DNA of 64,000 nucleotides from Ginglymostoma cirratum (Eukaryota): assembly GCA_024137785.1 (NCBI GenBank), contig JAHRHZ010000027.1, positions 164,368 through 228,367 of the forward strand, given 5' to 3'. The notes beneath the pieces were generated by a model, which did not search any database, was not told the DNA's origin, and saw only the letters and a list, made by a program, of their open reading frames with translations. Below are positions 5,165-61,204 of the stretch, in pieces. Within the stretch, counting starts at the first letter, position 1; every line of letters starts with the position of its first letter. Both the position numbers and the translations under genes were made by a program.

Positions 5165-5488
5165 AAAATGTCTCTTTTCCTGAACTTTAATTTTAATCAC
5201 AACCAATTATCTCATGTTCTGGGGACTCAGTGACAATGTCGTGTGAATCTGCCCGGGAATCCCTCCCCATTCACTACACATCGTCTGAGAAGGCCCCATC
5301 TCAAGATTCAAAGATCTCTGACACCAATAAACTGGATCTACATTGTCAATCCATCACACAGCAACATCATCAATATTACTGCACAGCCTCAAATACTCAG
5401 GGAGCAAAATCCAGTGAAATTGTTCATGTGTCATTTGCCAGGGGAGCAGAGAGAAGCTGTAGTGAGATGATATAAACCAGTAGCATCA
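5165..5488 (+). pseudogene. Gene A: pseudogenised C2 Ig exon, paralog of 12761-13084
   Basis: Same 324-nt length and near-identical core sequence; in-frame TAA at 5188, 5194 and 5473; core Trp TGG>TCG; AG acceptor and GTAAGT donor retained. Confidence 0.9.
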
Positions 5489-5659
5489 GTAAGTTTTTTT
5501 ACAGACACTGAGGTTGATTAATTCATTTCATGGCTATTCAAACTGTTCAATTGTTAAGTTTCTTTCATCACACGATTAACTGCACCTCATCACATTATGT
5601 CACTTTCATTTTTTAACAATTTTGAACAAAGCAATGATTCATTTTTGAAAATAGATGCT

Positions 5660-6060
5660 AGATGGAACTGGAGGAGCAGCAACTCATATTCCACCTCAGA
5701 AGCCTCCGCCCAATGGCCTAAATATGGATTTTACCAATCTCCCCAGCCCCGGCCTCATCCCATGACCAATCCTCCCTCTCATCCCCACCTCCTTGTCTTT
5801 ACAAAACCTGTCCATCTTCCCTCCTACCTATATGCCCCTCCCACATCACTGACCAATCCCCACCACTCTCTACCTGCACTCAACTATCACCATCCCACCT
5901 ACCTTCACCAGCCCCACCTCTCCTCTCTCTATTTATTTCCCAGCTCCCTTTCCCCTCCATACCATTTCTGAAGAAGGGTCCCAACCCGATATGTCAACTT
6001 TCCTGCTCCTCTGATGCTGCCTGGCCTGCTGTGTTCCTCCAGCTCCACACCGTGTTATCT
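5660..6060 (+). mobile_element. Penelope-like element 3' fragment with decayed hammerhead
   Basis: Reads LEEQQLIFHL, C-rich tract, then CTGAAGAagggtcccaacccGATATGTC and the shared terminal sequence. Confidence 0.75.
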
Positions 6061-6242
6061 TTAAATTATGTTGAAGTTATGTCACTACGACATCTCTCCA
6101 GAAAGCGGGAGTTGTCAACAAATGAATTCAACAAAATCTATTTTTCACAAAAAACCCTGAGGTTCCATTTGTGAAGAGTTCTCTCTTGGTTCTCTGTAAG
6201 TGAGACTCAGGTGAAGCCGAATATTATCTGATCCCTCAATAG

Positions 6243-6324
6243 GAAGTGAATATATTTATGAAGTCTCTTCAACAGCATTGCCAACATCGGCACCAACAAT
6301 AACACAAATATCTTTATGATCCAA
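6243..6324 (+). pseudogene. Gene A: stalk exon relic SEYIYEVSSTALPTSAPTITQISL*
   Basis: Aligns with exon 17826 and its upstream intron; Cys>Tyr; TGA at 6317; weak GTCTGT donor in phase 2. Confidence 0.7.
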
Positions 6325-7170
6325 GTCTGTCAGTAAAAAGTAGAACATTTTCATTGTCGATATTCCCATCAGCATTGATTCCAAGTGATAACATGTCATT
6401 TTGCATAAAAGTTTTCAAGAATTTCCAATTTCAGGCTATAATTTATCAGAATGGAGATGGTGCCTGATTTTATACGATGCTATCCCGTTACCTTCCTGAC
6501 TATGTTGCTGTTCATAAAATTGGAAATCTATGATCGAAAGTAACAATTTTCTGTTTGTCACCTCGCAGATTCGAGTGCAGTTTTCACCATTAAAGTTAAA
6601 TGCTTTATTATTGATCTCTGCTCATGGTGTTGTAGTTTTCAAAGCAAAGAAATGGCAGTTTTTGAACACTCAGGGCATTCTGCAGTATCACTGACAGGGA
6701 CATAACATTCTCCGTCATCTTCTCTTCCTCAGATCTGCAGAGTTACATCTTGTTCTCAAACTGAGAGGGTGAAAGGCTGTCTGGTTCCAGCTGGTTCAGA
6801 CTTGCCTGTTAGAAAGTGCAAGGAGCACTGTGGGATGATGCTATTCTGAGTTTCTTACTCACTGACTAGACCCTCACCGTTGTAATATTGTACCAGAAAT
6901 GTCCAGCTATTTAAGATATAATGATCAAGCATAACTTTATGATGTGCAATACATCATGCTCCTGAACCTTGTTTCAACTCACCTTTATCTATTGCTCATG
7001 TCATTCAGAAATTAAACTGTAGTTCAATTTCCCCACTTAACTCTCTGAGCTGTGCAACTTTACTTGGCGACAATAAACTAAGATTGTAGTGTAAACAACG
7101 GATAAATGTTTGAAACATGAAGCAGACTTGTTTCCCACAAATGGTTTTGTATTTTGTCCAGTTTGCCCAG

Positions 7171-7261
7171 TTGCGTTGTCTGGAATGTGACACACTGGGT
7201 GCTCCTCACTCTCCTGGTGATTAGTTCTGTTTCTGTCACAGTGTATATGAGAAAACATTAG
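7171..7261 (+). pseudogene. Gene A: activating-type TM exon CVVWNVTHWVLLTLLVISSVSVTVYMRKH*
   Basis: cccag acceptor (in-frame alternative at 7162), hydrophobic run, W-x3-[H]-W aligning with W-x3-R-W of gene C; TAG followed immediately by GTGAGT. Confidence 0.75.
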
Positions 7262-9897: not shown

Positions 9898-9934
9898 ATG
9901 TGGACTTTGCTTCTCCTCATTTGTTCCATTCCCG
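9898..9934 (+). CDS. Gene B exon 1: signal peptide MWTLLLLICSIP of a CD300/pIgR-like (MDIR-like) inhibitory receptor
   Basis: ATG in acgATG context, hydrophobic leader, G|GTGAGT donor (phase 1) joining in frame to the V exon to give ...IP-VSGA-LW, a plausible signal cleavage region. Confidence 0.85.
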
Positions 9935-11376
9935 GTGAGTGACCATCTGAGATGTTTATTCCAATAATTAATATTTATTAAAGTCTACTGTCTGGTTTAT
10001 ACAGTATAGAGATGTTTGCATATTTGGAGACATGCAAAAGCACAAAGGAACATCTTGTTGACACAGCAGGTAACATCTTTATTGCAGTGACAAATGCTGA
10101 GAGTTCGATTCTTTCTCCAGCACACTTTCCAAAGGAATGTGCATTCTCACAAAGCCAAACAGGTTCATCATCAACCTGCAAATTTTTCCAACGTGCCCAT
10201 GGCAGGGAGCGATATTGGATGAGATTCCAGGTCAGCTTTATCCAGTGCAGTGTGATACCCCTCAAAATACACAAACTGGTCTGAGGCTGGTGACCTGTTC
10301 CAGGAAGAACAAACTGCAGAAAACAGAAGCACCATGTGCTTTGACTGAGGTTCAAATGAAAAAATGTAAAAATACATGAAGAGCATCAGGAAATGTTATA
10401 TCTTCTTCTGAAAATATGATAATATCACAAGACTGTTACCAAATACTTTACAGCTGCATCATTAATTATGAATAAAATAAAGAAAAGGACAGCATGATGT
10501 TTTTTAAAGTGATTCAAACAGCATCATCAGTTGAACTGGTCCAAAGTTTTAAATGTTCAATATACACTGAAAACTGGTGAGGTAGTAAGCTGTCAATCTA
10601 AACATCTTGGGTTTGCTTTCATTTCTTTCACTGTGATGGAACAATTAATTCAATATTGTTTTGCAAGGTTGTGTCAGAAAAGAAGATGGTTTGTTTATAT
10701 TTCTCTTCCCATAAGAAGGCTATTTCCTTTCTGTCTTTAACTTGAACAAAGTTCTTTCATGTCCATCAATTATCACAATTGTAATTGGAACACTGCAATC
10801 ACATTATTGTTCAATATTGCCACTTCCCCTTCGTTTATAATGAAGCAGAGATGAACACGCAAAGTATTAAAGTTCCCAGGGCCGCAGCTCAGTGAAATAT
10901 TACAGGAAATCTTTCTGCAACAGATTGAGGCTCAAGCTCACCAATTTCATGCAGAATACTTTACAGACAGAAAACCGACGTGTGCCTCTGTGTGTTCAGC
11001 AATCCTCTTCAAGACTTCCTTTTTCAATAAGAACTCGAATTCGTGACTTCCATCAGCTTTAATTGTTCATGCATTTTCCCCCTTTCTCCTTACCTCTCAA
11101 CCACTTCATTTTATTTTAAAATCCTTTCTTTCGTTTCGGTTGAGAATTGTTTCCCACGCTATCATATCTTTTGAAGTAAAGTTTATCCAATCATCAACAG
11201 GCTGCCCCTCTTCTACACCAGGACACAATGTGGCAGCAATTTAAACATTTTCTCATGAAGTATCTCTCCAGAAAAATCAGTAAATTCCTTCTGTTATTTT
11301 ACTATCCTTGCACTGATAGCAATGTTTGATTTCAAATAATCCTGCCTTTACTGCCCTCAAGGTTCTGCACATTGAC

Positions 11377-11730
11377 CATAGATCATAGAATCCCCACAGT
11401 GTGGAAACTTGCCATTCGGCCCAACAACTCCACAACAACCCTTTGAGCAGCGTCCCAGTCCCATTCCGCTCCCCTATCCCTCTAGCCCTGCATTTCCCGT
11501 GGCTAATGCACCAAACCTACTCACCCCTGAACATTATGGGCAAATTAGCATGGCCAATCCACCGAACTTGCACATCTTTCGACTGTGGGCGGACACAGGA
11601 GCATCCAATGGTAACCCACACAGACACAAGGAGAACGTGCAAACTTCACACACGGTTGCTTGAGATTGGTAAAGGAACAGGGTCCCTGGCGCTGTGAGGC
11701 ATCAGTGCAAAACATTGAGCCACTGTGCCA
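11377..11730 (-). mobile_element. HE1-like tRNA-derived SINE in intron 1 of gene B
   Basis: Reverse strand starts tggcacagtggctcaatg...tcacagcgccagggacc and ends in a CR1-like gattctatgatctatg tail; another copy at about 18722-19055 (+). Confidence 0.82.
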
Positions 11731-12289
11731 TCTGTGATCGAGCTTCACATTTGTGAACCATCCCTTGCTGAACTTCAAATCTCTCCTTTAACTCCTTGAG
11801 GCCTCTCATAATCTTCCTGTGTCACATGTTGCATCTTCCCCTCAAGACCTGGAAATTCAGCCCCTCAGCACACCACGAGTCGACATACTCCCCTCTCCTC
11901 CCTGATTGAAACTCTCCCTCTCCGGTCAGAATAAGAACCCTTCAGCGCCCATAGCCTCCTTCACACTAATCCCCAGCCGACTCCAATCCAGGCCTGACAC
12001 TCAGACTGCTCTTCAGGAGTTACACTTCGATGGTGCCACACACGGTGGACTTAGAGCCAACATTGCTTAACACAAGCCCAATTTCAAGGCTGCCCCAAAA
12101 CTTGACCCATTGGGTATGACTGTTTAAATCATTCCCTGTGAATCTGGAACACTCAGAGGTTCTGATGAGGGTTTATATAAATTATTATCGTCATCATAAA
12201 CTAGATAGAATGTAGCTGATTACAATGTATCCATCCATGTTAAGCACTTCTTTAGAAATTTCCAAATCTCTAAAATATTTTCTCCTCAG

Positions 12290-12610
12290 TTTCAGGTGCT
12301 TTATGGGCAGAGAAAGACGTTATGGGAATTTTGGGAAGAGCGATCACAATACATTGCCACTACGAAGCACGGCGGTACCAGTCACACATTAAATATTGGT
12401 GTCGCGGATGGACTCGTCAGTGTCATGTTATAGCAACAACAAACTGGGCAAATGGGAGAATATCCATCACTGATAACAAAACACAAGGAATATTTCTTGT
12501 TTCAATGAAGAAGCTTCAATGGGGAGATGCAGGATGGTACAGCTGTGGGATTGACAAACCTGGCATTGCCACTGACCCAATGTTTAATGTAAAGCTGCAC
12601 ATCTCAGAAG
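12290..12610 (+). CDS. Gene B exon 2: V-set Ig domain, CD300/pIgR/FcmuR-like
   Basis: tctcctcag acceptor; G-x-A-I-T-I-H-C-H-Y, KYWCRGWTRQC (extra C-C' Cys pair typical of the CD300/pIgR/TREM group), RISITDN, DAGWYSC; GAAG|GTACAT donor; phase 1-1. An in-frame alternative acceptor lies 6 nt downstream. Confidence 0.93.
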
Positions 12611-12760
12611 GTACATATGTCTCACTGATATTATTTCAATTTTTATTTCTGCTGATATGTCTGATCAATACCTTATCCAAGAAACAAGATAACAAAGTGT
12701 TGGAGAGTATTTGATTTTTCGATGGCAGTCGATTTCTCAACAATTGTTTCTTTCCTACAG

Positions 12761-13084
12761 AAACTGTCTCTGTTCCTGAAATTCGATTTTTGTCACAACC
12801 AAATGTCTCATGTTCTGGGGGCTCAGTGAATATCTCCTGTGAGTCTGCCCAGGGATCCCTCCCCATTCACTACACATGGTCTGAGAAGACCCCATCTCAA
12901 GATTCAAAGATCTCTGACACCAATAAACTGGATTTAAATTGTCAATCCTTCACACAGCAAAATCATCAATATTACTGCGCAGCCTCAAATACTCAGGGAA
13001 CAAAATCCAGTGAAATTGTTCATGTGTCAGTCAACAATGTAACAGAGAAGAACTGTTGGTATACAATACACATCGACAGCATCG
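12761..13084 (+). CDS. Gene B exon 3: C2-type Ig domain (FCRL/PECAM-like)
   Basis: tttcctacag acceptor after a 150-nt intron; GGSVNISCESAQGSLPIHYTW...YYCAASN; ATCG|GTAAGT donor; 324 nt, phase 1-1. Confidence 0.92.
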
Positions 13085-15215
13085 GTAAGTGTGAAGCAAA
13101 CAATATGATTTATTTTTTATTGAATGTGTATTGAAACTGTTTGCATTTTATCTCACTCTGTAAGACTGTAATTGATAAAACGCACTCCATTTGTTTCATC
13201 GCCAGTTCTGAACAAAACCAACGGTTTGCTTTGTTCTTCAAAAATGAGCAGGTACGTAAGATATTACCCACTGCATGCATGAGCATTGTAATAACTCCAA
13301 TAATCCCCGAAAATTAAAAAACGTTTGATTGACGGACAATTTGAATTTGTCTACCAGATCAAATTATCAAATTCGGTAAGTCACTATTATGTCCAGATTT
13401 TGGGCAGATATTGGGTATAGGTTGGAAGTGAGTTGTACAAATGAAATATCTGCAAGTATTGACTGCAGGCATTTCCTGATATGATCTCCTGTTCGAGCTG
13501 TCAGAGAAGAAGCAGGTCAGCATCAAGTAGCAATGACACACATAAACTGTATTTGTAACTATCAGCAGCGGCTCATGTGGCTGCACTCTAACATTTATCA
13601 CAAACATGCTGTGTGTTCAAGTTCCCCTTTGGGGTTAAAATGCAGCTGGATACCACTGCCCAGCAGAGAGAGGGAATGCTGTGCTCTTGCAGCTGAGACA
13701 GTGTCGATGAGGTGATAAACTGAGAACCTGTTCACCCTTTGGGATAGCATCATTTGTAAACTATTTGCAGAATGGAGGCTCTCCTGGTGTCCAAGCAAGC
13801 ATTCCTTCCTCAATCAATGTTGATAAAAACAATCAGATTTTTGAGAGAATTACTTCAATTCTGTTGGCTGCATCTAAATTACCTTCTACATATTGCTGCA
13901 TTACAACTGTTTGCTACCTTCAACTCAGTACTTCATCGATAGTGAGGTATTTTGGTGTCTCCTAAGATCCTGTAAGGCACTATTTGGTTCATTAATGTCC
14001 TTTCACGAAGGAAACATGCAGCCCTTCCCAGCTCTGGTCTACATGGGACTCCAGCAATGTGCTTGATTCTTAACTGCTCTCTTCAAAAGGCCTAGAAAGC
14101 CAATCAGACAGGGGTAATTCAGCATTGGCAGCAAAAGCTGGCCAACAAAGAATAGACAATCAAACTTTAACAATGTATTTATTAAAACGCAACACTCCCA
14201 AGCCATGTTGTCTGAATACTCTGTGGAGATGTGGTACCTCATTTGTCTGTTTCATGGATCGTCAAAGATCAGCCAATGGAAAATCACTGAAAGGTTATGT
14301 GTCTGTGGATGGGGTTTCACATTATTCCTGAAACCTCAGAAAACTGACCCCAAGAGGGTAGAATTGACCACAGCCAATATCAGCAAGCGACAGCTCCATG
14401 TGAAACTCATGGTTTTAAAAAGTGGGATATCTGTGTTGTAGTTACCAGCTCAAAACCTTTAACAGAACCCAGATTTAAAGACATCAACTCTCAGATTTGG
14501 GAAAAATAGTAAAAAAATTGTCTGTGTGTGGAACCACAGAACATGGGAGAGATACTGAACCAAACTTTCATATCAGTTTTCACTGTGGATAAAAACACGG
14601 ATGCTGGGGAACTCGGGGATATAAATATTGATGTCTTGATAACAGTCCACATTGCAGAAGAGGAAGTGCTGAAGATCTTAAAAAGCACAGAGGTAAATAA
14701 ATCGCTGGGATCTGATTAAGCGTATCCCAGGATGTTGTGGGAAGTTTTAGATGAAACTGTGGGACCCTGAGCGAAGATATTTGTATCATCCGCAGTCACG
14801 GTTGAGGTTCTGAGGACTGGAGGCTGGCTAATGTTGTGCCTTTATTTAAGCAAGGCTGTGATGAGAAGCCTGGGAACTACAGACTTGTGAGCCTGACATC
14901 GGTAGTCGGTGAGTTGTTGGAGGGGATTCTGAGAGATAGGATTTATATGCAGTTGGAGAGGGAAGGACTGTTTAGGATTAATCAGCATGGCTTTGTGTGT
15001 GGGAAGTCGTGCCTTAAAAACTTCTTTGAGATTTTTGAGGATACAACCAAAATGATTGATGAGGACAGAGCAGTAGACTTTGTCTACATAGACTTTAGTA
15101 ACAAGGCTCCTCATGGTAGACAAATTTGTAAAGTTAGATCACATAGGATTGAGGGTGACCTTGCCAATTGTATACAAAATTGGCTTGACAGCAGGAGACA
15201 GAGGGTGGTTGTGGA

Positions 15216-16776
15216 GAGACAGTAAGAACTGCAGATGGTGGAGAATCTGAGATAACAAGGTGTAGAGCTGGATGAACACAGCAGGCCAAAACACATCCTA
15301 GGAGCAGGAAGGCTGACGTTTCGGGCCTAGACCCTTCTTCAGAAATGGGGGAGGGGAAGGGGGTTCTGAAATAAATAGGGAGAGAAGGGGAGGCGGATAG
15401 AAGATGGATAGAGGAGAAGATAGGTGGAGAGGAGACTCATAGATCACAGAGGCGGGAATGGAACCTGTAAAGGTGAGTGTAGGTGGGGAAGTAGGGAGGA
15501 GATAGGTCAGTCCAGGGAGGACGGATAGGTCAAAGGGGTGGGATGAGATTAGTAGGTAGGAGATGGGGGTGGGGCTTGAGGTGGGAGGAGGGGATAGGTG
15601 GGAGGAAGGACAGGTTAGGGAGGCAGGGACGAGCTGGGCTGGTTTTGGGATGCGGTAGGGAGAGGGGAGATTTTGAAGCTTGTGAAGTCCACATTGATAC
15701 CATTGGGCTGCAGGGTTGCCAGGCTGAATATGAGTTGCTGTCCCTGCAACCTTTGGGTAGCATCGTTGTGGCATTGCAGGAGGCCCAGGATGGACATGTC
15801 GTTTGAGGAATGGGAGAGGGAGTTGAAATAGTTCACGACTGGGAGGTGCAGTTGTTTAGTGCGAACCGAGAGTAGGTGTTCAGCAAAGCGGTCCCCAAGC
15901 CTCTGCTTGGTTTCCCCGATGTAAAGGAGGCCACAACGGGAACAGCGGATGCAGTATACCACATTAGCAGATGTGCAGGTCAACATCTCCTTGATGTGGA
16001 AAGTCTTCTTGGGACCTGGGATGGGGGTGATGGGGGAGGTGTAGGGGCAGGTGTAGCGCTTCCTGTAGTTGCAGGGAAAAGTGCCGGGTGTGGTGGGGCT
16101 GGAGGGGAGTGTGGAGCGGACAAGGGAGTCCCAGAGAGAGTGGTCCCTCTGGAAGGCAGATAAGGGTGGGGAGGGAAAGACGTCTTTGGTGGTGGGGTCG
16201 GATTGCAGATGGCGGAAGTGTCGGAGGATGATGCATTGGATCTGGAAGTTGGTGGGGTGGTACGTAAGGACGAGGGGGATTCTGTTTTGGTTTTTCTTGT
16301 GGGGAGGGGGTGTGAGGGATGAATTGCGGGAAATGTGGGAAATGGGTGTTCTCGACTGCTGAGGGGAGGAAGTTGCGGTCCTTGAAAAACGAGGACATCT
16401 GAGATGTACGGGAGTGGAATGCCTCATCCTGGGAGCAGATGCAGCAGAGGCGAAGGAATTGGGAATAGGGGATGGCATTTTTGCAGGAAGGTGGGTGGGA
16501 GGAGGTGTATTCTTGGTAGCTGTGGGAGTCGGTGGGCCTGAAACGAATATCGGTTTCTAGGTGGTTGCCGGAGATGGAGACAGAGAAGTCCAGGAAGGAG
16601 AAAGAGGATTAGAGATGGTCCAGGTGAACTTAAGGTTGGGGTGGAAAGTGTTGGCGAAGTGCATGAACTGTTCAAACTCCTCATGAGAGCACGAGGCAGC
16701 GCTGATGCAGTTATCAATGTAACAGAGGAAGAGGTGGGGTTTAGGGCCAGTGTAGGTACGGAAGAGGGATTGTTCC
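15216..16776 (-). mobile_element. Penelope-like element (RT C-terminus plus GIY-YIG endonuclease)
   Basis: LFLCYIDNCI (RT YxDD-like), CTSANVVYCIRCSRCGLLYIGETKQRLGDRFAEHL (GIY-YIG), terminal repeat with hammerhead core. Confidence 0.92.
15312..15345 (-). ncRNA. Minimal type I hammerhead ribozyme motif
   Basis: Minus strand tttCTGAAGAagggtctaggcccGAAACGTCagc: intact core, stem II, palindromic ACGT stem III, GUC site; stem I very short. Confidence 0.65.
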
Positions 16777-17825
16777 GTTGTTTTTTGGACTGGAGGCCTG
16801 TGACCAGTGGAGTTCCGCATGGATCAGTGTAATTTATTAAAAAAATTTGGATGAGAATTTAGGAGGCATGGTTCATAAGTTTGCGGTTGACACCAAAATT
16901 GGTGGCATAGTCAATAACTAAGAAGGTTATTGAAGATTATAAAGGGATCTTGATCAATTGCGTCAATGGGCTGAGGAGTGGCACATTGTGCTATTTCACT
17001 AAATGTGTGGTATTGCATTTTGGTAAAACAAAAAAGGGCAGGACTTATACAATTCACGGGAGGGCCCTGGGTCGTGTTGTCTTGTTGAGCTTGTACAGGA
17101 TGTTCGTGAAGCCACTTTTGAAGTACTGTTTACTGTTCTCGACACCCTGCTACAAGAGGCTTATTACTATATTGAAGTTGGTTCGGAAGAGATATACCAA
17201 GATGTTGCCAGAACAGGAGGATTTGAGTTTCACTCGGCTGGATAGGCTGGGACGTTTTCCACTGGAGTTTAGCAGGTTGAGGTGTGAACTTATAAAGGCT
17301 TCTCAAATCATGAGGGGCATAGATGAGATGAATAGCAAAGGTCTTTTCCCTCGGGTGGGAGATTTCAAATGAGAGGGAATATTTTTAAGGTGAGAGAAGA
17401 AAGATTTAAAAGGGACCCGAGGGGCAATTATTCAAACAGAGGTTAGTTCGTGTGTGGATGGGGACACAGCTAATGACGGGACAGTTACAACATTTAAAGA
17501 TGTTTGAATTAGTAGGTGAATAGAAGAGGTTTGGAGGGATATGGGCCAAATGCAGACGAGTGGGACTAGTTTCATTTGAGAGACTTAGTCAGCATGGTCG
17601 TGTTGAACCGAAGGGTCTGTTTCCGTGCTGTATGACTCAAGGACTCTATAAAATTATCAGGAGAACTAAGTCACTTATAGGTGTCACTGTGACCAGAGAA
17701 GGGGAAATGATGATATCACACAGGCTTTTCTCCAAGTAATGAGCCTCCATTTGTTCATAATGTTCTCTTAGATAATTACCAGTGAAAATGAGGTGAATCT
17801 GAACATCATTCCCTTGTTTCAACAG

Positions 17826-17946
17826 GACAAGGATATATCTGTGACATTTCTTCAACAATACCACCGACTACTACACATTCCCAAAATAAAATTACAAGTT
17901 CTTCTTTCAGTCAAAAGCAAACGTCAGAAGATGAACCCTCTGAAAG
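17826..17946 (+). CDS. Gene B exon 4: Ser/Thr-rich stalk GQGYICDISSTIPPTTTHSQNKITSSSFSQKQTSEDEPSE
   Basis: ttgtttcaacag acceptor, open in phase 1, AG|GTATGA donor in phase 2; a homologous exon and acceptor region exist at 6243. Confidence 0.82.
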
Positions 17947-18721
17947 GTATGATATTCTTTGTTTTGATTCCTTGTGCGAGATTAACAATATTGTTTAACA
18001 ATGCTGGCCAAATGAGTGAAAGTCATTTGTTATTTTGGAAATGAAAATGGTGCTGGGTTTAGATCAGGCTGTTGTGTTAGTTTCACATTGAAGGTCCAAT
18101 TGTATTTGAAAAGCACAAATGGAGAATATTGTTTCTATTTTGTTGGCCTTCAGATTGCATTGCTCATCTCCATTACTTCACCATTAAACTACATGGTGTG
18201 TGATGTACTGTGCTTGGCCAACCTACCTTGCGGCTATGTGTCCTGGAGTGACATTTCAGGATAGTTTCATTCCTGCTGGTGAAAAGGAATATTTGAGGTT
18301 TTATATCTGCACGGTGACAGATAACTTTCAGCGTTAGCCTTTCGCATCAACTTACTCGCCTGAGCTGTCGGGAATGAGCAGCAGGAACTGTGAGTGTGAT
18401 ATAAACACTGAGTAAATAATTCTTTAAAGTTACAAAGGTGATGAAGAGAAAATGACAATTAAGTGTCAGTCACAAATGGAGAATATTGGAAACGCACAGT
18501 GATTTGGTCCACATTAGCGCAGAAGTAGATTAGTGCGGAATTCTTCACAATTCTAGTCCACAGCCGAAACTAAACAAGTCTGTCTGATCATACCTTTCTC
18601 GCAACTTCTGTTTTGCACTCAGGTCTCGAGCATGTTTAGTCCATTTGTTTTTAACCAGATAATATTCTGCGGTACAAAAAGCATTGTAAGTCTATAAATT
18701 TTATTTTAGGTCATATTTTAT

Positions 18722-19055
18722 CAGTGGCCTGGTGGCTCACAGCACCAGGGACCTGCGTCTGACTCCACACTCGGGTAATTGCCTGTATGTAGTTTACACA
18801 TTCTCCCCGTGTCTGTGTGGGTTTCCTCTGTGTGCTCTGGTTTTCATCCCACAGTCCAAAAATGTGCAGGTTCGGTGGATTAGCCTTGCCAAGTTAACCA
18901 TAGATTCCAGGGATTTGTAGGCTAGTTGGATGAGCCATGGCAAAGAGGGTAAGGGGATTGCATCTGGGTGAGATGCTCTTTGGATGGTTCATGGAACTTT
19001 ATGGGCCGAATGGCCTGTTTCAACACTGTAGCGATTCTGTGATTCTATGATCTGT
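18722..19055 (+). mobile_element. HE1-like SINE (degenerate)
   Basis: ctcacagcaccagggacc...cacattctccccgtgtctgtgtgggtttcctc...gattctatgatct. Confidence 0.78.
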
Positions 19056-19244
19056 ATGTCAGTTGTGTAAATTTATGTAAATGAAGATCATCTGAATCTA
19101 ATATCCATTCTTGATACTTGTTGCTGATTTTCAATGGCCATCTGGTGCTCTTTTATTCCATTTTTACAAAGTGAAATTACCACATTTAAAAAAGGTTCAG
19201 TGGTGATACATTCACCTTCGATACCAACGGTTGTGACCTCACTT

Positions 19245-19600
19245 CCCCTTCAGAGACTTGGGCACATTATCAATGCTGAGTCTCCAGTGCAGTACTGAGA
19301 GAGTGCCGCACTGTGGTGGTACTGCCTTCCCTGTGTGATCAGTCCAGGCCCCATCTACCCCTCTCAGGGGAATGTGACAGATCTCATGGTGAAATTCATG
19401 GAAGAGCAGGGCCGTTCTCCCTGGAGACCTGGGCAAAGCCTTTCCTTTACCAATTCCAAATTACATGTTCGTTCATCTAATTATTGTTTATGGGAGCATG
19501 CTGTGAGCAAATTGGATCCCATGTTTGCCATTGCAACAGTTAATATAAATATTCCACTCCCTGCAGTACTTTTGGATGTCCTGAGGTCATAAAAGTCTTT
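19245..19600 (+). mobile_element. Deu-domain (SacSINE-like) SINE relic; similar relics at about 13660-14000, 40390-40720, 48020-48400, 51790-51925 (-) and 54935-55290
   Basis: ccagtgcagtactgagagagtgccgcactg-type core and tggatgtcctgagg-type 3' end recur across copies. Confidence 0.65.
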
Positions 19601-19679
19601 CTTAATATATTTCTTGTGTCAAATGCCCAAGAATCAATTGTGAACAAACACTGTCCCTTTTCCATTCTCTCTATCACAG

Positions 19680-19768
19680 TCTGATTTACATTGTACTCGG
19701 TGTGCTGGGGGCCATTCTGGTTGTCTTTGCTGCTTCTCTACTTTTGTACCTGAGGCAAATGAACAAGG
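19680..19768 (+). CDS. Gene B exon 5: uncharged transmembrane segment SLIYIVLGVLGAILVVFAASLLLYLRQMNK
   Basis: Pyrimidine tract plus cacag acceptor, phase 2 matching exon 4; 24-residue hydrophobic run followed by R/K; G|GTGAGT donor. Confidence 0.9.
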
Positions 19769-20626: not shown

Positions 20627-20679
20627 GTATATTCTGCATCACATGTCAACAAAGAGATAAGACTTTTAATGATGACCTG
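20627..20679 (+). CDS. Gene B exon 6: juxtamembrane cytoplasmic exon GIFCITCQQRDKTFNDDL
   Basis: tttcag acceptor, CTG|GTAAGG donor; its phase 1-to-0 is exactly what is needed to join the TM exon to the ITIM exon. Confidence 0.78.
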
Positions 20680-21259: not shown

Positions 21260-21571
21260 GAACTGGCATCAGTGGAAAAGAACATGGTATATGCAAACAT
21301 TAACCACATTCAAACGAACACAGCAGAAAGACAGAGAGAGAGAAGAGACAACTTGAAAAATGATGAAATCATATATTCGGCCTTGGAGTTTCAAAAGAAA
21401 TCTTCATCAGTGAGAGGTGGGCTGGCAAGGCACACAGTTGACAACTCCAACAGTGTCATCTACAGTGACCTCAATTTACCAAACCAGCCCCCAAAGGGGA
21501 ATAAGAAAGCCCCGCTACACAATACTGCTCAGGGAGCTGAAACGGTAGTTTATGCTGACATTGGATTTTAG
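21260..21571 (+). CDS. Gene B exon 7: cytoplasmic tail with four ITIM-like motifs (MVYANI, IIYSAL, VIYSDL, VVYADI) and stop
   Basis: caattttag acceptor in phase 0; ORF to TAG at 21569-21571. The seven exons sum to 1257 nt = 418 aa plus stop, with no internal stops. Confidence 0.9.
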   Translation, partial: ELASVEKNMVYANINHIQTNTAERQRERRDNLKNDEIIYSALEFQKKSSSVRGGLARHTVDNSNSVIYSDLNLPNQPPKGNKKAPLHNTAQGAETVVYADIGF

Positions 21572-23672: not shown

Positions 23673-23705
23673 TGTGTGTGTGTGTGCGTGTGTGTGTGTG
23701 TGTGA

Positions 23706-23743: not shown

Positions 23744-23746
<3 letters not shown>

Positions 23747-45310: not shown

Positions 45311-46726
45311 CATCTGTTTACATAGTGTTTGTATCTTCTATTACATCTATTTGTGTTTCCTATTGCTTATTATTTTCATAATAGGCAGAAGGTCTTTAAA
45401 CACACTGATGGAAGATCATGAGATCGAGTACGGCTCAGGCTCTCAAAAGGATAACACATGGTACTTACTGTAGAATAGAAAGGCCGAAAGTGACTTTTGG
45501 CATTTTCCAAAAAAACTGTTCAGCTGTTAAAGCAAAGATAATAAGATTTCGAGTATAAATTATTGCAATCTTTCCCTTTCAGTCAAATACAATCAGTTCA
45601 TATGAAACTGCCTTTGCTGGCTTCCATGAGGATTAAACATAGTTTAGACAAAAGGAAGTTTTGAAATTATTTTGTATATTTCCTTTGGTTTTATTTTTCT
45701 GTGTGGCGCCTGAAGCAATGAGAGGAGTTAAAGATGCATTTACAGGTCAAAAGGAAATGGTTGCAATTTGTCACACCAAAATAAACATCACAGAGTCAAC
45801 ATTCCACTCCCAACTATCCATTGTCACAGTTTCAAAATCGAGCTCCCCATTTGGACCAGGTAGAGGACACTTGCATCCATCAGTATGCACTGCACTGTCC
45901 CAGTCCAATGACATGCCACTTAATTTACAAGGCCAATATATTTGATGAACTGCTGCTTGTGAGAGGGTGGAAAAGTATGATCGAGGTTTATAAAATCATG
46001 AAGGGTATAGGTAGGGTTAATTATTTTCCCTAGAATGGGAGATTCCAAAACTAGGGGCCATATTTCTAAGGTGAGAGGAGTGAGATTTAAAAAAGACATG
46101 GGAGACAAATGTTTTACACAAAGGGTGGTTCGTGTGTGGAATGAACTTCCTGACGAAATGCTGGATGTGGGTGCAATTACAATGTTTAAAAGACACTTAG
46201 ATAACTACATGAATAGGAAAGGTTGGAGGGAATGTGAGCCAGGAGCAAGCAGGTAGGACTAGTTTAGTTTGGGATTATGGTCGGCATGGACTGGTTGGAC
46301 CGAAGGGTCTGTTTCCATGCTGTATGACTCTATGAGGAAATCACTAGCTGGGCAGCATTTGTTGTCCATCCCTATTTTTCCCAAGGACAGGTTAAGAGTC
46401 TACCACATTGCTGTGGGTCTGAAGTCACATGTAGGCCAGATCAGGTAAGGATAGCAATTTCCTTCCTTAAGGACGTTAGTGAACCAAATGGATTTTTCCA
46501 ACAATCGACAAGGGATTCATCATCATCACTCGACTCCAAATTCCAGTTTTTTTTCTAAATGAATTCAAGTCTCACCATCTGCTGTGGTGGTATTCGAAAC
46601 TGGGAACCCGAGGATATTACCTGGGTCTCTGGATTATTAGTCTAGTTACTTCTTTCATCATTTATCATTGGTTAGTGAAACATTTACTATAAACATTTTC
46701 TTAAAACAATAGCTTTTGTTTCACAG

Positions 46727-54715: not shown

Positions 54716-54755
54716 ATGGATTTTGCATTCCATCTCTTCATGATGTCCTTCTCAA
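54716..54755 (+). pseudogene. Gene C: probable leader exon MDFAFHLFMMSFS
   Basis: ATG, hydrophobic leader, phase-1 donor A|GCGAGT (GC donor or mutated GTGAGT); joins the V exon as ...FS-ISGAIL; ETS-like acttcctg at about 54589. Confidence 0.55.
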
Positions 54756-56995
54756 GCGAGTGAAGACATTGCATTAAACTTTTCTGTGGAAATTATATTT
54801 GTGTGTGTTAGTCCAAACTTTAGAGAAACATGAATTGTTTGTGAGATTTCTTTCAGAACTGTTGCCTAATTATGTTTGGGATCCTTGCCATCCAATCATC
54901 CTGTAGCAAGTCCGGTTTGCAGAACACCCATTAGTTCTGGCTCAGTTGTGGAACAGTCGCCTTGGTATCCAAAACGTTAACTTCAGGAGACTTCAGCACT
55001 GAGTCCAAGGTTAACACTCCAGTTTAGGACTGATGGCTGAGACACCCGTACCTCTCTTCTCTAGTACATGGAAGAGGTATCATGTTGTTTACTTGAAGGA
55101 GATCAGAGGGATGATCTGGCCAATATTTCTTTCAATCCCTTAAAAACAAATTATTTAATTGACAGCTTACTGTGCACAAATTGGTCGAGGTATTTGTTTC
55201 TTACAATATGACAGTGTCTATACGTCCAGCATATTTTACAGGTTATAAAGCATTCTGAAGTCATTTAAGGTGCTATATAAATGCAGCCTTTCCTTATCTT
55301 TTTATCATTAGCCCAACAGCTCTTGGCAGTCTCTTAGCATCCCAGGCAGTCTCACCTCCCCCTTTCAGCCCCAGAGTATGTATTTAGCCTCTGTCAAACA
55401 GTTCAACACGATGGTTAAAGTGTGAAAAATCAAGGGCTGACCATTACCCTGTGAGTTCCACTCCTCTGCAGCAAGTCCACTTGAGCATTCTGTCCACTTA
55501 CCCACTCCTCACCTTTCAATATACTTTCAATTGCAATAATCTGATTTTAAAGAGCTATTGGGGGAAATGAAAGAGGTGTCACACTGTGTATTGTCCTCAG
55601 GTGATTTTTTTGTGCCTTGACTCACACTACGGATTATGAAGGAAACTTCTTTCATTTAGGATGAAGCAAAGCAGACTTACATCGAGCATGTGCAGTAAAG
55701 AGGGATGTTTAGAAAATCACCCTCTTGTAAAAACTCAGATACAACCTGATTGAGTACGTTGTGTCAAACCAACGTTGAAACCATCAAAAGTTTTGCGGTT
55801 TTCTGGCAGAATTGATGTGGTAGCAGGCAAGAGCAGTAGTTCTCTATATCACAGTAAGCCAGATTCTTCAGACAGGATGAGTGCTCTGTCATAGCATGTT
55901 GATTTATTTACTGCAGCTCCTTCTCATTCTTTTCTACAAATTGGAATGAGAGGAAAGTTTTTTTTTTAACTTGTGGTCATCTGATTAGTACCTGATTAGC
56001 AGAATTAAGCTTTCAGATTTTCTGGCGACTTCCTGAGTTGAAGGTTATAATGATCTGAATGATGTGGGCTCTGGCCAAATTAGGTGACAATTACAGCAAG
56101 ATCCACCTCAAAGTCGAGATCATCTCGCTCCATGGACATCTGGGTGGCCAACGATTTGCTCTCAACAAAAGAAAAAGAAATCCATGGTGTTATACAGTAC
56201 AGGCCAATGTACCAAACCAAAATACATCTGTTCAGATATTTGTAGGGACCTTTCTCATCAACATTTTATGTAACTCATTGAACATGTGATATGTAAGAAT
56301 TTCGCTCCTTGTCACATTTTATGATTTACTTTAAACATTAAGGCTGATCCTGCAAGAGTTGTGTTTTAGGAAAGTTCTGAAGATCAAACTGAATTGATAC
56401 TTCAAGTTGGCTATGGGTCAGCTCTACTCCTAATTTGCAAAGGCAACTCTTCGGACTTTGAATAGACGCACGTGTGTCAAGGTGAGAAACAATTGCACAG
56501 ATGTTGATTTTCTCATGAATTTTCTTATCTGATCACTGTTATCTGCTCCTATGTTCTACGTTTCTATGTGCAGGGGATATTTTCCCCTCATTTCACTCTG
56601 AAAAGGCTAATCCACGTTGTGAAAAAATTACCATCCAGCAGAAATAGTTTCCCTTTACCAAATGCCTTTAAAATATTGACAATTTGAAGGACCACAATGT
56701 GCCTATCTGTACAATCCCAGCCTGTAATGAAGCCCCTGGAGCTGATAGTTCTAAGGGCAGCAAGGTTCCAGTACAGAATGCTTTCTGCACAGCTTTGCAA
56801 GATGCACCGAGCACAGAAGTCCATCAGGTGCCTGTACACCATTAGAATGATCAAAGTAGGAGATTAGCTTGAAGAGTCTCAATGTACATTTTTAAATGTT
56901 AAATGTTTGAAATTCACACTCCACTGTTCATCTGTTGCAGTGATTTACTTTATTGAGTTTTAAAGCATATTGTGTCATAATTTCACACGAAACAG

Positions 56996-57361
56996 TTTCA
57001 GGTGCCATATTAACTGGACCAGCTGTCATAAATGGATCGGTGGGACAATCAGTTACTATCAGGTGTAAATACAACAAATATTACAGAACTTCTCCAAAGT
57101 ACTGGTGCAAAGGTGACAACAGGGAAGACTGTGTCATTCTAATCGAAACCCAAGGCCCGAGGAAGACAAATTCTGGTGGAAGAATAACCATAGCAGTCGA
57201 CAATGATGCAGGAGAATTCTTTGTCACGATGGAACGCTGAACAAAAAATAACCAAGAGTTGTACTGGTGTGGAATTGCAAGGTTTTTGTGGGACCTGTTA
57301 AGTCCTGTGGACTGTACATTAGTGATGGACAGACTTTCACCTCCTGGGATCCTCCCTGAAG
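56996..57361 (+). pseudogene. Gene C: CD300/pIgR-like V exon with premature TGA
   Basis: cag|TTTCAGGTGC start shared with gene B; GQSVTIRCKY, KYWCKGDNREDC, RITI; TGA at 57238-57240, after which the same frame continues TKNNQELYWCGIA (DxG decayed). The 3' end is uncertain: phase-1 GTAGGA donor after 57361, or a lost donor near 57327. Confidence 0.85.
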
Positions 57362-58605
57362 GTAGGATGTGAATAATTTCCAGTTTTCAGTGGGCAGTTG
57401 GAATCCTGGTTAGCCAGCAGAACAACAAAAGATAACATTGAGCTAAGTCTAATGGGGTGTCTCGATTCCCACCCAGGGCAGGCTGGGAATCCTATGAAGC
57501 ACAAAAACTGCTGTCTCATAGCAATCCAGTAGCCGATTGGACATTAATTGGCTGAATCCGTGTTCCTAGCTTCTGATTGGCTGGATTTCTCTGAGGGAAA
57601 TCTTCCTGTCTTTGAGGCATGGAAGTCCTATCTTCAGTTTATGGTTTCTCACTTGGACCAAGCCATTCAGCATAGGAGTGGGTGTTGGGTAAGGGAATTT
57701 AAAAGGTTATGGTAGGGTTTAGGGGTTAAATTAGAGCAGGGATTGGGGTCAAACTCACAGCAGGAGCCCTCTGATAGGCACAGAGCACCCAACATTGAGG
57801 CCACCCTCTCCACCTTGCAGCAGCTGGAGCAAGAAAATATGTCAGACTGAGCATTTGGCAAGAGTCTACCCCAGTACAGGATTGAATCCCAGCGGCTGCA
57901 GGATGGTACCCTTAAGGTTTGTTTTATATTCATTCATGGGATGAGAACGTCACTGGCTGGGCCAGCATTTATTGGTCCCTAATTGCCCTGAGGGGAGTTA
58001 AGAGTCAACCACATTGGTGTGGGTCTGGAGTCTCATGTCAGCTAGACAAGGTAAAGATGGCTGTATCCTTCCCTAAAGGACATTAATGAGTGAGATGGGC
58101 TTTTTCCTGAAAATCAGCAATGTTTTCATGGTCATCCACTCTTGATTCCCAATTTCATTTATTGAATTCAAATTCCACCATCTGCCAGAGCAGGATTTTT
58201 ACCCTGGTCTCCATAACATTATTTGGGTCTCTGGGTTCATAGTCTAATAGTCTGAATAGTCGAATAGTCTAGCAATAATACCACTTGGCCACCAGTTCCC
58301 TGTGGGGCATGAGTTGCCCAGAACTCATGGGCATCAATTGGCCGAGCTGTGGGTCAGCAGGTTTCATAAAGATGCAGGGGGCAGGACAGCGTAGGTGGGC
58401 AGCAGATGTTGGATTTGATGTACCCTCTCACTTTTAAATATGTCAGCATTAAATTCAACCTAAAATACCTCATATTCATAATAACTCTGTTCCATCAAAT
58501 TTTCCTTCTTTTTCAGTTCCAAGTCTCTGATAACTCAGACTGTCATGTATAACAATTTTATGGTAATATGATCCAATAAAAAATAATTTACACAATTTTG
58601 AACAG

Positions 58606-58654
58606 ATGTGAAGGTACGTCTTGTAGGTTCGCCTTCAGAGGAGGAAATGCTGAG
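58606..58654 (+). pseudogene. Gene C: candidate short stalk exon DVKVRLVGSPSEEEML
   Basis: aacag acceptor, AG|GTAAAT donor; phase 1-to-2 bridges the V and TM exons. Confidence 0.5.
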
Positions 58655-60611
58655 GTAAATGTCATACTTACCTAAACCTGGTCCTTTCTGAACATTTGTC
58701 TGCAGCTTTGTGATCATGCGAGAGACGGGACTCAATGGGAATTTGTGAGCATTGTGCCATGGCTGAAATATAATCGCTATGAGCAATGATGGGGAGGCTA
58801 TGGTCATTGCATTGGAACCAAGAAGGCTGAAGGATGGTTTAATTGAGGCACACAAAATTATGTGGGTCTCGAGCAGAGTCAATTGGGCAATCAAACTTTC
58901 CTGAGCAGTGTGATTGATAAGCAGGGGCCATAGGGTACAGTGTTTGGTAGAAGGTTGAAAGTGGAGATGGGGAATGCATGGTAAGGATCTGAAAGTCACT
59001 GCTCAAAGGGCTAGTTGAGCCAAAAACCCTCTCTGGTGTCCGACTAGTCAGAGATGGGAGATGGTTTGGGAGATGCATGTCAGGACTCTATTGGTAACTA
59101 ATGCACAAAGTGTTCAGGAAGTTTACATTAGTGAAGGACAGATTTTTACCTCCTGGGACCCTCCCTGAGCATTTCTGATGCTGAGCTCAAGGTGGAAACT
59201 TGGGATGGATATATGAAGCCTGCCATTTTATTTTGGTTGAATACCTGGCCAAACTGATCAGCAGTCAGTGACACCCATCTGAGCATCACAACTGGACCCA
59301 CATGATCACCCCCACCGCATGACGACAACCTCACCCCCACCCAACATCCCAACTACCCGCAGACCTGAGACCTGGAAGGGATTGTATTTTATACAGACAT
59401 ATTTGCAATATTGAACTCGCAGCCTGCTTCACATTTAGTTGGTCACTTCATGCACTCAGATGCCCAATACATCAGTTCACAGTTGCAGATGTATAAATTA
59501 CATATTTGTACTTCACTATCCTTTAGCTGGGCAAAATCATCAAATCAGGGCATTTGCAAAAATTTCCAGAGCATCAATTGGATCTCTGATTGATTTTAGT
59601 TGAAGAGTTGGACGTGGATTCTCATGAGATTCCCAATGTCTTGTCATAGCTTTGATGGTAGTTTAGAAAAATCCCCACCGAAATGTTACAAACAGCCAAG
59701 ACAGTTGGAGATCAGCTTACCATGGATTGAAATTTCACATCAGCCATTCATTACTTAGAATGATGGAGAGAAATGAAAATTTGACAGGCCCAGCAGTCAG
59801 AGGTTATCTAGCCTCAATGAAATTTTAATCCATTACATTTCTCAGAAAGCCAACAGGTTCTCATCTAATATTAGTTTTTACAACTTCCATTGTCCCACTT
59901 ACAACACTAATCCTAATACTGGCCAGGCATGTATGGCAGTGTTCCAGCCCATCCCGTCTGTTTCTTACTCACGGACTAAGGTTAAAATTACCCCCACTGT
60001 ATTTTCATTATCAATATGTACTTCATTTAAAACCCAACACCTAGCAGCATTCATTTATAATATCGGTTGAGTGCTTAAGTCAAAACATAAAAATACATTT
60101 TGTTAAGAACAAAAACCAAAATCCTGTATATGACTGCATCTGTGGATAAAACAGTTATTATCATCTCAGGTTATTATGCATCTATATCAGAAACATAGCT
60201 ACTATTTCTGTTACTGCCGAGGGACATGTTTCCTCAGTCTCCATTTCACTTTCACTTGTATCAAGTCTTTTTCAAAGCAAAGGTGGTTTGCAGAAGCTGA
60301 TCCATGTGCAATGCTATCATTACATTATGATGATTATTGAAAAAGAAACGATATTCTCCACTGTATCGCTCTTGGCACATGCAACTCGGGGAATCGTGTC
60401 TTTCCAACTTGACATTTGCTGTTGCTCACTTTAATGGATAGAATGCTATGGGTCAAAGTGTGTAAAAATGCCAGTTGATCCAGGAGAACAGAAGCAGAAA
60501 TGTTTGTGATTATCCACTGTATGTGCAGCCAAACAAATCATAGATCCAAGCTAACTCTATGGGTTCTGAAACCTATTTTGATAGAAATAATTTTGTCTTC
60601 TATCTATCTAG

Positions 60612-60708
60612 GCGAAATTCTCTGTACTGTTATATATGGAGCATTTTACGTTGGGTATTCTTTGCCATTCTCCTCATCTGGACCATTTTACTCAAATTGA
60701 AAATATAG
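60612..60708 (+). pseudogene. Gene C: activating-type TM exon RNSLYCYIWSILRWVFFAILLIWTILLKLKI*
   Basis: ttctatctatctag acceptor in phase 2; TM with Arg (CGT at 60649); 4-residue tail; GTAAGT donor at 60723, 14 nt after the stop. Confidence 0.82.
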
Positions 60709-61204
60709 TTGATGAAATATTGGTAAGTTGTTGACTTTAATAGTTTCTGGTTATCTAAGGTTAAATAAAAAATAATTGGAAGAATTCTCTATACTCATTA
60801 TAAATATTTTAAAAGAGATAATGTAACCATGCGAACATCATATTTCTGAAATCAGCATTCATCTTACTCAAAGAATATTACCAGAAAAGATATTTTATTG
60901 ATCCAGTTTTCAAAGCTTAATCGTAGATACATTTATTTCATTAACCTCCTAAATGTAAAGTACTTTATATTCAGATTATTAAACAGATGAATATTTTACA
61001 AAAGCAGAATGATAATTCCAGAACATACATTTCAAGATGTCCCAAAATACAATGGAGGAGTTCTTACTTTAATATAAAGTGTGCGGGCAGCTGGTTAAAA
61101 TGTCTAAAATTGATGATGTATTATGAAAATGAGAGCAGCCCACAAACTTGTGCATTGACTTCAGCTCAAATTCCTCTGCACAGAAGATCTCCTGGGGATA
61201 GAGA

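Follow-up and report, generated by a model that had tools for sequence, protein, structure and literature searches.

An intact inhibitory-type gene between two disabled activating-type genes in a probable shark MDIR-type receptor cluster

Introduction

What kind of receptor system is laid out in this locus, and does the survival of one inhibitory-type gene beside two broken activating-type ones reflect a fast turnover of activators? The window, a stretch of 64,000 nucleotides from Ginglymostoma cirratum, holds three genes that we call A, B and C. In the KIR, LILR, Ly49 and PIR clusters, intact and pseudogenised members adjoin, introns are rich in repeats, and near-identical ectodomain exons occur in partners of opposite sign. 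The window resembles these clusters in its dead members lying beside an intact one, its similar ectodomain exons in partner genes and its repeat-rich introns, but differs from them in domain types and lineage. The original prediction read A, B and C as one cluster, a paired system in which CD300-like V domains were coupled to FcR-gamma and activators were rapidly replaced. Here the exons of the three genes, their lesions and their relatives in other cartilaginous fish are set out, and the readings of the locus are weighed against them.

Results

Homology searches were made with exons queried singly and with broken exons as separate pieces, and exon lengths and phases were in part worked out by eye. 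No flanking non-receptor gene was found in the window, and the region from 21.6 to 54.7 kb yielded no further Ig exons, only retroelement ORFs.

Gene B has seven exons (9898-21571, 418 codons), with GT-AG borders throughout, consistent phases and no stop codon. They are as follows.

9898..9934, + strand: leader exon, MWTLLLLICSIP, phase 1
12290..12610, + strand: V exon of CD300/pIgR type, 321 nt, phase 1-1 (Pfam V-set, E 7e-9; sequence reading)
12761..13084, + strand: C2-type Ig exon, 324 nt, phase 1-1 (Pfam Ig_3 and Ig_C17orf99; sequence reading)
17826..17946, + strand: stalk exon, 121 nt, phase 1 to 2 (matched by P0006 and P0010 in tblastn; sequence reading)
19680..19768, + strand: uncharged anchor exon, phase 2 to 1 (hydropathy scan, tblastn with P0006; sequence reading)
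20627..20679, + strand: first cytoplasmic exon
21260..21571, + strand: terminal exon, carrying the stop codon; over 103 aa it is 77% identical to the P0006 tail (E 3e-45, tblastn; sequence reading)

The PDB matches of the V exon are pIgR and CD300 domains, the last exon encodes three canonical ITIMs (IIYSAL, VIYSDL and VVYADI) and one near-ITIM (MVYANI), and the C. plagiosum protein P0006 (414 aa) is collinear with gene B. Judged from its sequence, the gene would be expressed as a working inhibitory receptor made of V, C2, stalk, uncharged anchor and ITIM tail, and this tail would recruit SH2 phosphatases.

Upstream of gene B lie the remains of gene A, of which three exons are recognizable.

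5165..5488, + strand: C2-type Ig pseudo-exon, 324 nt (matches gene B and shark proteins in tblastn; sequence reading)
6243..6339, + strand: stalk pseudo-exon, 97 nt, phase 1 to 2 (tblastn to the P0007/P0009 stalk; sequence reading)
7171..7261, + strand: anchor exon, ..CVVWNVTHWVLL..MRKH, with TAG at 7259-61 followed by a GT donor (sequence reading and tblastn)

The C2 pseudo-exon equals the C2 exon of gene B (12761-13084) in length and aligns with it at about 83-90% DNA identity; the homology between the two genes starts 54 nt before the exon, abutting a repeat. It contains TAA at 5188-90, 5194-96 and 5473-75, and its fold Trp codon is changed from TGG to TCG. In the stalk pseudo-exon there is a TGA at 6317-19, and Tyr stands where relatives have the stalk Cys. 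The anchor reads ..WNVTHW.., with His (CAC, 7193-95) at the position of the Arg in intact relatives. In total, gene A carries four in-frame stops and has lost fold Trp, stalk Cys and anchor Arg. No V exon of gene A was found within the 5.1 kb that the window holds upstream (1-5164; V-like ORFs and tblastn). Intact V-C2-stalk relatives exist in Hemiscyllium and Chiloscyllium (P0007, P0009, P0011 and P0012), with the anchor motif WDVIRW and the ending ..WDVIRWVLFTLLVI..TRKH; in rays the versions of these proteins terminate in ..WKVGRW... The anchor exon of gene A shares 20 of 29 residues with the Chiloscyllium P0009 C-terminus (E 8e-12). Gene A would thus be an old, decayed remnant of the activating counterpart of gene B, a receptor presumably built of the same V-C2-stalk ectodomain followed by an Arg anchor and a tail of five residues.

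Gene C lies at the far end of the window and is of a different design.

54716..54759, + strand: coding part of the leader exon, MDFAFHLFMMSFS.. (pattern search, sequence reading and orthologue leaders in the alignment)
56996..57361, + strand: V exon of CD300/pIgR type, containing the TGA at 57238-40 and a 44-nt replacement
58606..58654, + strand: mini stalk exon between V and anchor exons, 49 nt, phase 1 to 2 (sequence reading)
59124..59168, + strand: intronic source copy of a 45-nt stretch, 41 of 45 positions identical to the end of the V exon
60612..60722, + strand: anchor exon, ..YCYIWSILRWVFFAILL..KLKI (sequence reading)

The in-frame TGA of the V exon (57238-57240) falls on a conserved Leu codon, and at 57312-57355 an in-frame stretch of 44 nt replaces 11 nt in the last beta strand. 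As the sole GT donor of the leader leaves 44 nt (phase 2) where the V exon requires phase 1, the leader probably carries a 4-nt surplus, that is, a frameshift; the cDNA-like contig of the relatives has a ..CAG end before 56996. The anchor, ..WSILRW.., has its Arg codon (CGT) at 60649-51 and is followed by the tail KLKI, a TAG at 60706-08 and a GT donor at 60723 that leads to a 3'UTR exon. Its exon matches the C-terminus of Heterodontus P0202 in 23 of 31 residues (E 1e-14), and orthologues carry a peptide matching the 49-nt mini exon. Gene C would have been disabled recently in this assembly by the Leu-to-stop change; it carries the templated 44-nt replacement and the probable 4-nt leader frameshift as well.

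We rejected a decayed second V exon ahead of 59124, as the similarity there is limited to the 45-nt stretch. The V exons of genes B and C begin, at 12290 and 56996, 6 nt upstream of a first-look estimate.

These structures bear out the original prediction in much of its detail: gene B was said to be intact, gene A to have a W-x3-H-W anchor with stops in its C2 and stalk exons, and gene C to combine an Arg anchor and a 4-residue tail with a TGA in the V exon, and all of this was found at or near where it had been placed. The 44-nt replacement and the probable leader frameshift of gene C had escaped notice, as had the missing V exon of gene A.

HMMER searches returned single-V proteins of 170-175 aa with the stalk, anchor and tail of gene C in Mustelus, Heterodontus, Heptranchias, Hemitrygon, Mobula and Narcine. 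At the position of the TGA every one of these proteins has Leu, and at that of the 44-nt replacement SPVxLKVxE. Gene C appears to be the local copy of a separate family conserved across sharks and rays, with a plan of about 173 aa (leader, single V, 16-residue stalk, W-x3-R-W anchor and KLKI tail). By its sequences this family looks conserved, low in copy number and not expanding.

The exon order of gene C is supported by a transcript-like contig of 1003 nt in which V exon, 49-nt mini exon and anchor exon are joined at GT..AG borders; it extends 384 nt past the anchor exon and represents a copy 97.5% alike to gene C. The joint from 58652/4 to 60610/2 is present in three RNA-like runs and absent from a DNA run. 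Direct splicing from V to anchor was rejected, for phase 1 then meets phase 2 and a non-membrane frame results; the basking-shark isoform X2 (P0204) is exactly the frame-shifted product of skipping the mini exon. A Pro/Thr-rich ORF at 59283-59411, a candidate for the gene C stalk, goes unused in the spliced contig.

Discussion

The window would be part of a shark MDIR or CD300/pIgR-like receptor cluster evolving by gene birth and death. It is probable, in our judgement, that in such a cluster gene B is a working inhibitory receptor, gene A an old remnant and gene C a recently broken copy of a conserved family. This is the explanation that best accommodates the exon structure, homology, lesions and splicing observed here; the timing of the gene A and gene C losses we infer. 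The three genes do not form a single trio, for A and B share the V-C2 architecture and C belongs to a separate single-V family. The idea of a paired system held in part: activating-type genes (Arg anchor, minimal tail) accompany a gene with an ITIM tail, CD300/pIgR-like V domains are shared, and both activating-type copies are disabled. It is not new, however, for the MDIR of skate were known.

As far as the description in PMC3031540 goes, the MDIR of the clearnose skate (Cannon et al., 2006, Immunogenetics 58:362) form multigene activating and inhibitory families with CD300-like V domains. By that description the window genes resemble them in coming from a cartilaginous fish, in being multigene, in adding other Ig domains to V domains of the CD300/TREM/pIgR type and in occurring with both signs (PMC3031540). 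The comparison is one of descriptions, taken from PMC3031540, and particular MDIR genes may be orthologues. In phmmer searches of the PDB, the V domains matched pIgR with E of 1e-33 to 1e-54, CD300F/CLM-1 with 1e-14 to 1e-21 and TREM2 with 1e-6, in addition to Pfam V-set. The architecture is modular, with V and C2 in gene B and V-C2-C2 (P0012) or a single V (P0202) in relatives, and forms with a charged anchor and short tail are found along with ITIM forms. The single-V family of gene C, of roughly 173 aa, could be one of the MDIRs already described or a family apart from them.

The likeness to mammalian CD300 lies in a single V domain with an extra disulfide and in ITIM-tailed and charged-anchor members within one cluster. 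CD300F/CLM-1 and CD300A are the best solved single-domain structure matches of the shark V domains, NCBI labels the shark proteins 'CMRF35-like molecule', and a direct reading finds the second disulfide (YWC...C) in the single V of gene C and its orthologues. Genes A and B depart from CD300 by an added FcRL-like C2 domain, which places them outside the single-domain rule. Mammalian activating CD300s have Lys or Glu in the anchor. The shark anchors have neither a mid-anchor Lys, as used with DAP12, nor a Glu, but an Arg close to the outer end.

An alternative for gene C is that the gene is kept in the species, the TGA copy being a null allele or diverged duplicate with an intact expressed version alongside. 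All four public runs (every contig that covers 57239) give T at this position, hence TTA (Leu) in place of the TGA of the window. The intact version shows splicing, with depth far greater over exons than over introns. Some low-depth contigs of the same runs match the window at 100% identity, and for three intronic stretches (58678-58922, 59976-60126 and 60016-60166) the runs of one organism, organism A, contain 91-97%-alike contigs along with 100%-alike ones, as expected if one organism has both versions. This hints at one species holding both the TGA and the TTA versions. Against it, the diverged letters are largely common to two differently labelled organisms, and the intact copy could be no more than a sister-species orthologue; on its sequence, it may be an allele, a paralogue or an orthologue of the gene C in the window. 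Since no reads of the window's own V exon were seen in the four runs, the gene C lesions, TGA included, are documented by the assembly only. An assembly error is a less likely source of the TGA copy than a null allele or a diverged duplicate, and sequencing error is disfavoured by three separate lesions in a single copy. On balance we regard the retention of gene C in the species as possible, though doubtful.

The adaptor has to be considered next. We propose that the anchor Arg of intact members most likely docks a small ITAM-bearing adaptor dimer via the membrane Asp of the adaptor; both the docking and the identity of the adaptor we infer. Receptors associated with FcR-gamma have as their signature a minimal tail and an anchor that carries Arg at its N-terminal end (PMC2413239, PMC4536121). 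In the NxxR receptors (LILRA2, PIR-A, NCR1, GPVI, OSCAR, Fc-alpha-R and Xenopus XFL TM1) a separate anchor exon is joined to varied ectodomain types (PMC2413239, PMC4536121). The shark anchor exon likewise is separate and attached to different ectodomain types, and, as in these receptors, the Arg falls within the N-terminal third of the anchor and the tail is a few residues long and free of Tyr motifs. The intact shark relatives differ in that their ectodomains are of V type rather than C2-only, and in lacking the strict NxxR motif, for which they have DxxR or SxxR between two Trp. The residue three before the Arg is Asp in the A type and Ser, Arg or Asn-less variants in the C type; only the dead gene A has Asn there, and in it the Arg is His.

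A dedicated shark system whose CD300-like V domains use FcR-gamma in particular for signalling, with activators that turn over fast and inhibitory genes that persist, would account for the 4-5-residue tail and for an Arg in the outer third of the anchor, as in FcR-gamma partners (PMC2413239), and for a window with both activating-type copies dead and the inhibitory one intact. However, the gene C family has kept nearly the same length, and a conserved sequence, in sharks and rays alike, which is the reverse of fast turnover, and the copies nearest to gene C in the public reads retain the Leu codon, so the rapid replacement of activators first suggested does not fit this gene. A 2014 survey did not find the FcR-gamma gene in cartilaginous fish (PMC4016189), and this negative survey was all that our literature search for shark FcR-gamma or DAP12 returned. 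The Arg anchor could also couple in the manner of DAP12. FcR-gamma coupling as derived from the position of the Arg appears overstated, and we judge such a dedicated system unlikely, more so than the retention of gene C in the species.

The W-x3-R-W anchor exon, common to two ectodomain architectures and to sharks and rays, might be the cartilaginous-fish homologue of the tetrapod NxxR module that docks FcR-gamma, a suggestion we offer tentatively and with more doubt than belief. An ESM Atlas query with the anchor part of P0202 gave no usable match.

A reading of the two anchor exons (7171 and 60612) as chance ORFs or as parts of other genes, activating-type genes being absent, has almost no probability and is refuted. 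In its favour, they have no DNA similarity elsewhere in the window, and they enter in phase 2 where Ig exons leave in phase 1. Against it, stalk exons of 97, 121 and 49 nt close this gap, both match C-termini of intact shark proteins (E 8e-12 for gene A and 1e-14 for gene C), and the spliced contig joins V, mini and anchor exons. The original prediction had staked its case on these exons being spliced to Ig exons in intact paralogues, and in intact genes of sharks and rays both are so joined, according to annotated proteins and the RNA-like contig.

Returning to the birth-and-death reading, dead activating partners beside intact inhibitory ones are its expected result, and the understanding of paired receptors is unchanged. 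What the window provides is precise exon structures for three genes of a shark CD300/pIgR-like, MDIR-type cluster, and the finding that across elasmobranchs two ectodomain designs draw on a single type of Arg-bearing anchor exon. A small and conserved activating receptor with one V domain also comes to light. Its copy in the window seems to have been broken recently and, should the break prove fixed in the species, would amount to a natural knockout. Were the anchor exon a true homologue of the NxxR module, the portable activating module and an FcR-gamma-like partner would date to the jawed-vertebrate ancestor, contrary to the published account in which the gamma chain first appears with bony fish. 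The window makes it testable whether the conserved anchor Arg of cartilaginous fish works with an ITAM adaptor, and with which one.

Gene content of the window

The window is vertebrate DNA with a G+C content of 39-46%, CpG depletion and an absence of N runs, and retroelement ORFs are abundant across it. Four Ig exons were found, all on the + strand, two of V type (~12290 and ~56996) and two of C2 type (~5165 and ~12761), and a search of stop-to-stop ORFs together with tblastn using these exons themselves revealed no further Ig exons in the window. Pfam assigned the V exons to V-set and the C2 exons to Ig_3/Ig_C17orf99; in PDB sequence searches, the V domains grouped with pIgR and CD300 (CLM-1, CMRF35-H), TREM2 and NKp44 being more distant.

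Reverse-transcriptase-like ORF blocks lie in both orientations at 767-5069, 14806-17400, 26034-29684, 32500-36376 and 61268-62556, and LINE/CR1-type and other retroelement blocks occupy most of the space between the three receptor genes, A, B and C. The repeat at 4600-5069, just upstream of the gene A C2 exon, is 75% identical to 17191-17636 in the C2-stalk intron of gene B and 67-69% identical to copies at 45983-46328 and 25890-26253, a pattern that suggests related copies from one retroelement family, not a single insertion held in common. A very high-copy short repeat in the first intron of gene C (57914-58237; also at 19957-20265, 46332-46582 and 36975-37105) has a word depth in the read sets 10^4-10^5 times that of its flanks and many internal deletion variants. 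The long (TG/CA)n microsatellite at 23620-23790 is the source of spurious ORFs, rich in Cys/Val or in His/Thr, on both strands.

The inhibitory-type gene B

Gene B was modeled by mapping shark proteins on the window and reading the exon borders directly.

Exons of gene B, from protein mapping and border reading
9898-9934, + strand, leader exon
12290-12610, + strand, V exon
12761-13084, + strand, C2 exon
17826-17946, + strand, stalk exon
19680-19768, + strand, uncharged anchor (transmembrane) exon
20627-20679, + strand, first cytoplasmic exon
21260-21568, + strand, last exon, stop at 21569-71

With GT-AG at every border of its seven exons, coherent phases (1, 1, 1, 2, 1, 0) and 418 codons in total, gene B is intact, as the original prediction had it. 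It is collinear with the Chiloscyllium plagiosum protein P0006 (414 aa), and its tail contains three canonical ITIMs and one near-ITIM. When the stalk donor is left unused, the frame continues for 17 codons (17947-17997, ..YDILCFDSLCEINNIV) and then stops; the C-terminus of the whale-shark model P0010 (284 aa) is exactly this read-through peptide, a match that could reflect either soluble isoforms conserved between sharks or an annotation artefact.

The remnant gene A

The C2 exon of gene A (5165-5488) has exactly the length of the gene B C2 exon and 83-90% DNA identity with it, and the homology between both genes begins only 54 nt ahead of this exon, adjoining a repeat; no V exon of gene A was found in the 5.1 kb upstream within the window. 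Gene A had been proposed to be disabled, and the lesions agree with this: three TAA codons in the C2 exon, where the fold tryptophan is also gone, a TGA in the stalk exon (6243-6339), and His in the anchor exon (7171-7261) at the position of Arg in intact proteins. The stalk matches that of P0007, an intact relative, and of the Chiloscyllium protein P0009, with Tyr replacing the stalk Cys, and the anchor is identical to the P0009 C-terminus in 20 of 29 residues (E 8e-12). Hemiscyllium ocellatum and Chiloscyllium plagiosum have annotated intact A-type proteins (V, C2, stalk, ..WDVIRW.. anchor and ..RKH tail end), and Mobula and Hemitrygon have ray versions (..WKVGRW..); their presence in sharks and rays indicates that the B type has a real and old activating partner. 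Judged by its sequence, gene A is what is left of an activating V-C2 receptor that decayed long ago; the local copy is dead.

In the intact A-type anchors of P0007, P0009 and P0012, an Asp lies three residues before the Arg (WDVIRW), so that each anchor has opposite charges separated by a single helical turn; the two may cancel each other or may both contribute to adaptor docking.

The single-V gene C

The V exon of gene C (56996-57361) is only ~33% identical to that of gene B. Used as the query of a full HMMER search, the first piece of this exon matched short single-V proteins in sharks and rays.

Relatives of gene C
Mustelus asterias, 173 aa, 60% identical
Heterodontus francisci, 174 aa
Heptranchias perlo, 175 aa
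Hemitrygon akajei, 173 aa
Mobula hypostoma, 173 aa
Narcine bancroftii, 171 aa

In the alignment of gene C with its orthologues, all relatives follow a common plan, namely an MDF.F leader start, one V domain ending in SPVxLKVxE, a 16-residue stalk, an ..IWSILRW.FFAILL.. anchor and a KLKI or KLKM tail. The anchor exon of gene C is identical to the Heterodontus C-terminus in 23 of 31 residues (E 1e-14). By these sequence comparisons, gene C is assigned to a conserved family distinct from the A/B type. Single-V counterparts with an ITIM tail occur in skates and Heptranchias (P0133, P0195, P0207), and none was found in the window.

The TGA that the original prediction placed in the V exon is present at 57238-40, at a position that is Leu in all eight aligned orthologues. 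Position 57239 is T, giving TTA, in every contig of the four public read sets compared with the window, and no read of the window's own version of the V exon was seen in these four runs. In addition, 44 nt (57312-57355) stand in frame in place of the relatives' 11-nt exon end, so that ..SPVELNVAE becomes ..SPVDCTLVMDRLSPPGILPE; the insert is identical in 41 of 45 positions to intronic 59124-59168, itself also found in relatives, so the replacement looks templated. In the leader (ATG at 54716, MDFAFHLFMMSFS), the only GT donor comes after 44 nt, whereas phase 1 would require 40 nt; at the junction the contig of the relatives terminates in ..CAG, and the leader in the window thus seems to carry 4 nt too many and to be frameshifted. 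The mini exon also begins differently, with Asp-Val in the window versus a conserved Gly. Taken together, the lesions argue for genuine decay of this copy and not for a base-calling slip.

The V-exon contig from the runs is 97.5% identical to the window, the introns mostly 91-97%, and among these runs those of one organism also contain low-depth contigs 100% identical to a window intron. There are two candidate origins for the intact TTA version, namely an allele or duplicate within the same species and the orthologue from a sister species, and under either origin the loss of gene C is recent. Because a long distance separates the stop from the last junction downstream of it, nonsense-mediated decay would be expected to target the transcript of the window copy.

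Splicing of the anchor exons

The Ig exons exit in phase 1 and both Arg/His anchor exons, of genes A and C, enter in phase 2, a mismatch resolved by phase-shifting stalk exons of 121 nt (B), 97 nt (A) and 49 nt (C). A 1003-nt contig, from three runs that we call RNA-like for their exon depth far above intron depth, contains 56993-57311, then the mini exon to 58652/4 joined to 60610/2-60722, and 384 nt beyond. The mini exon-anchor joint has GT..AG ends, is absent from the DNA-like run, and in the frame of the contig the mini exon continues directly into the Arg anchor. The refuting case set for the original prediction, in which no intact paralogue joins these anchor exons to Ig exons, therefore does not apply.

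Direct joining of the gene C V exon to the anchor exon, skipping the mini exon, gives a non-membrane tail (frame over 60612-60697, GEILCTVIYGAF..), and the basking-shark isoform X2 (P0204) carries the equivalent tail; skipping may be a real route to a soluble or non-anchored form.

Discussion

Architecture, homology and lesions were read directly in this work, whereas for function we infer that gene B would inhibit via phosphatases recruited by its ITIMs, and that in intact A-type and C-type receptors the anchor Arg would dock onto the Asp in the membrane part of an ITAM adaptor dimer. FcR-gamma partners are characterised by a minimal tail and by an Arg at the outer anchor end, and in Xenopus an NxxR anchor exon is attached to several ectodomain families, with FcR-gamma association demonstrated (PMC2413239, PMC4536121). 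The shark anchors have DxxR or SxxR between two Trp and so depart from the strict NxxR motif of these partners. FcR-gamma, pIgR and FcRL were not found in cartilaginous fish in a 2014 survey (PMC4016189); the survey predates good genomes, and its negatives for pIgR and FcRL are contradicted by the abundant pIgR-like and FcRL-like domains here.

Cartilaginous fish already have a described group of paired CD300-like receptors, the modular domain immune-type receptors, MDIR (Cannon 2006, summarised in PMC3031540), and 'CMRF35-like molecule' is the name under which NCBI pipelines predict the intact relatives. One intact inhibitory gene beside two dead activating-type genes is an expected outcome of birth-and-death evolution. 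Mildly new are the use of a single anchor exon type by two ectodomain designs across elasmobranchs, and a single-V Arg-anchor receptor that is strongly conserved, yet freshly disabled in the window copy.
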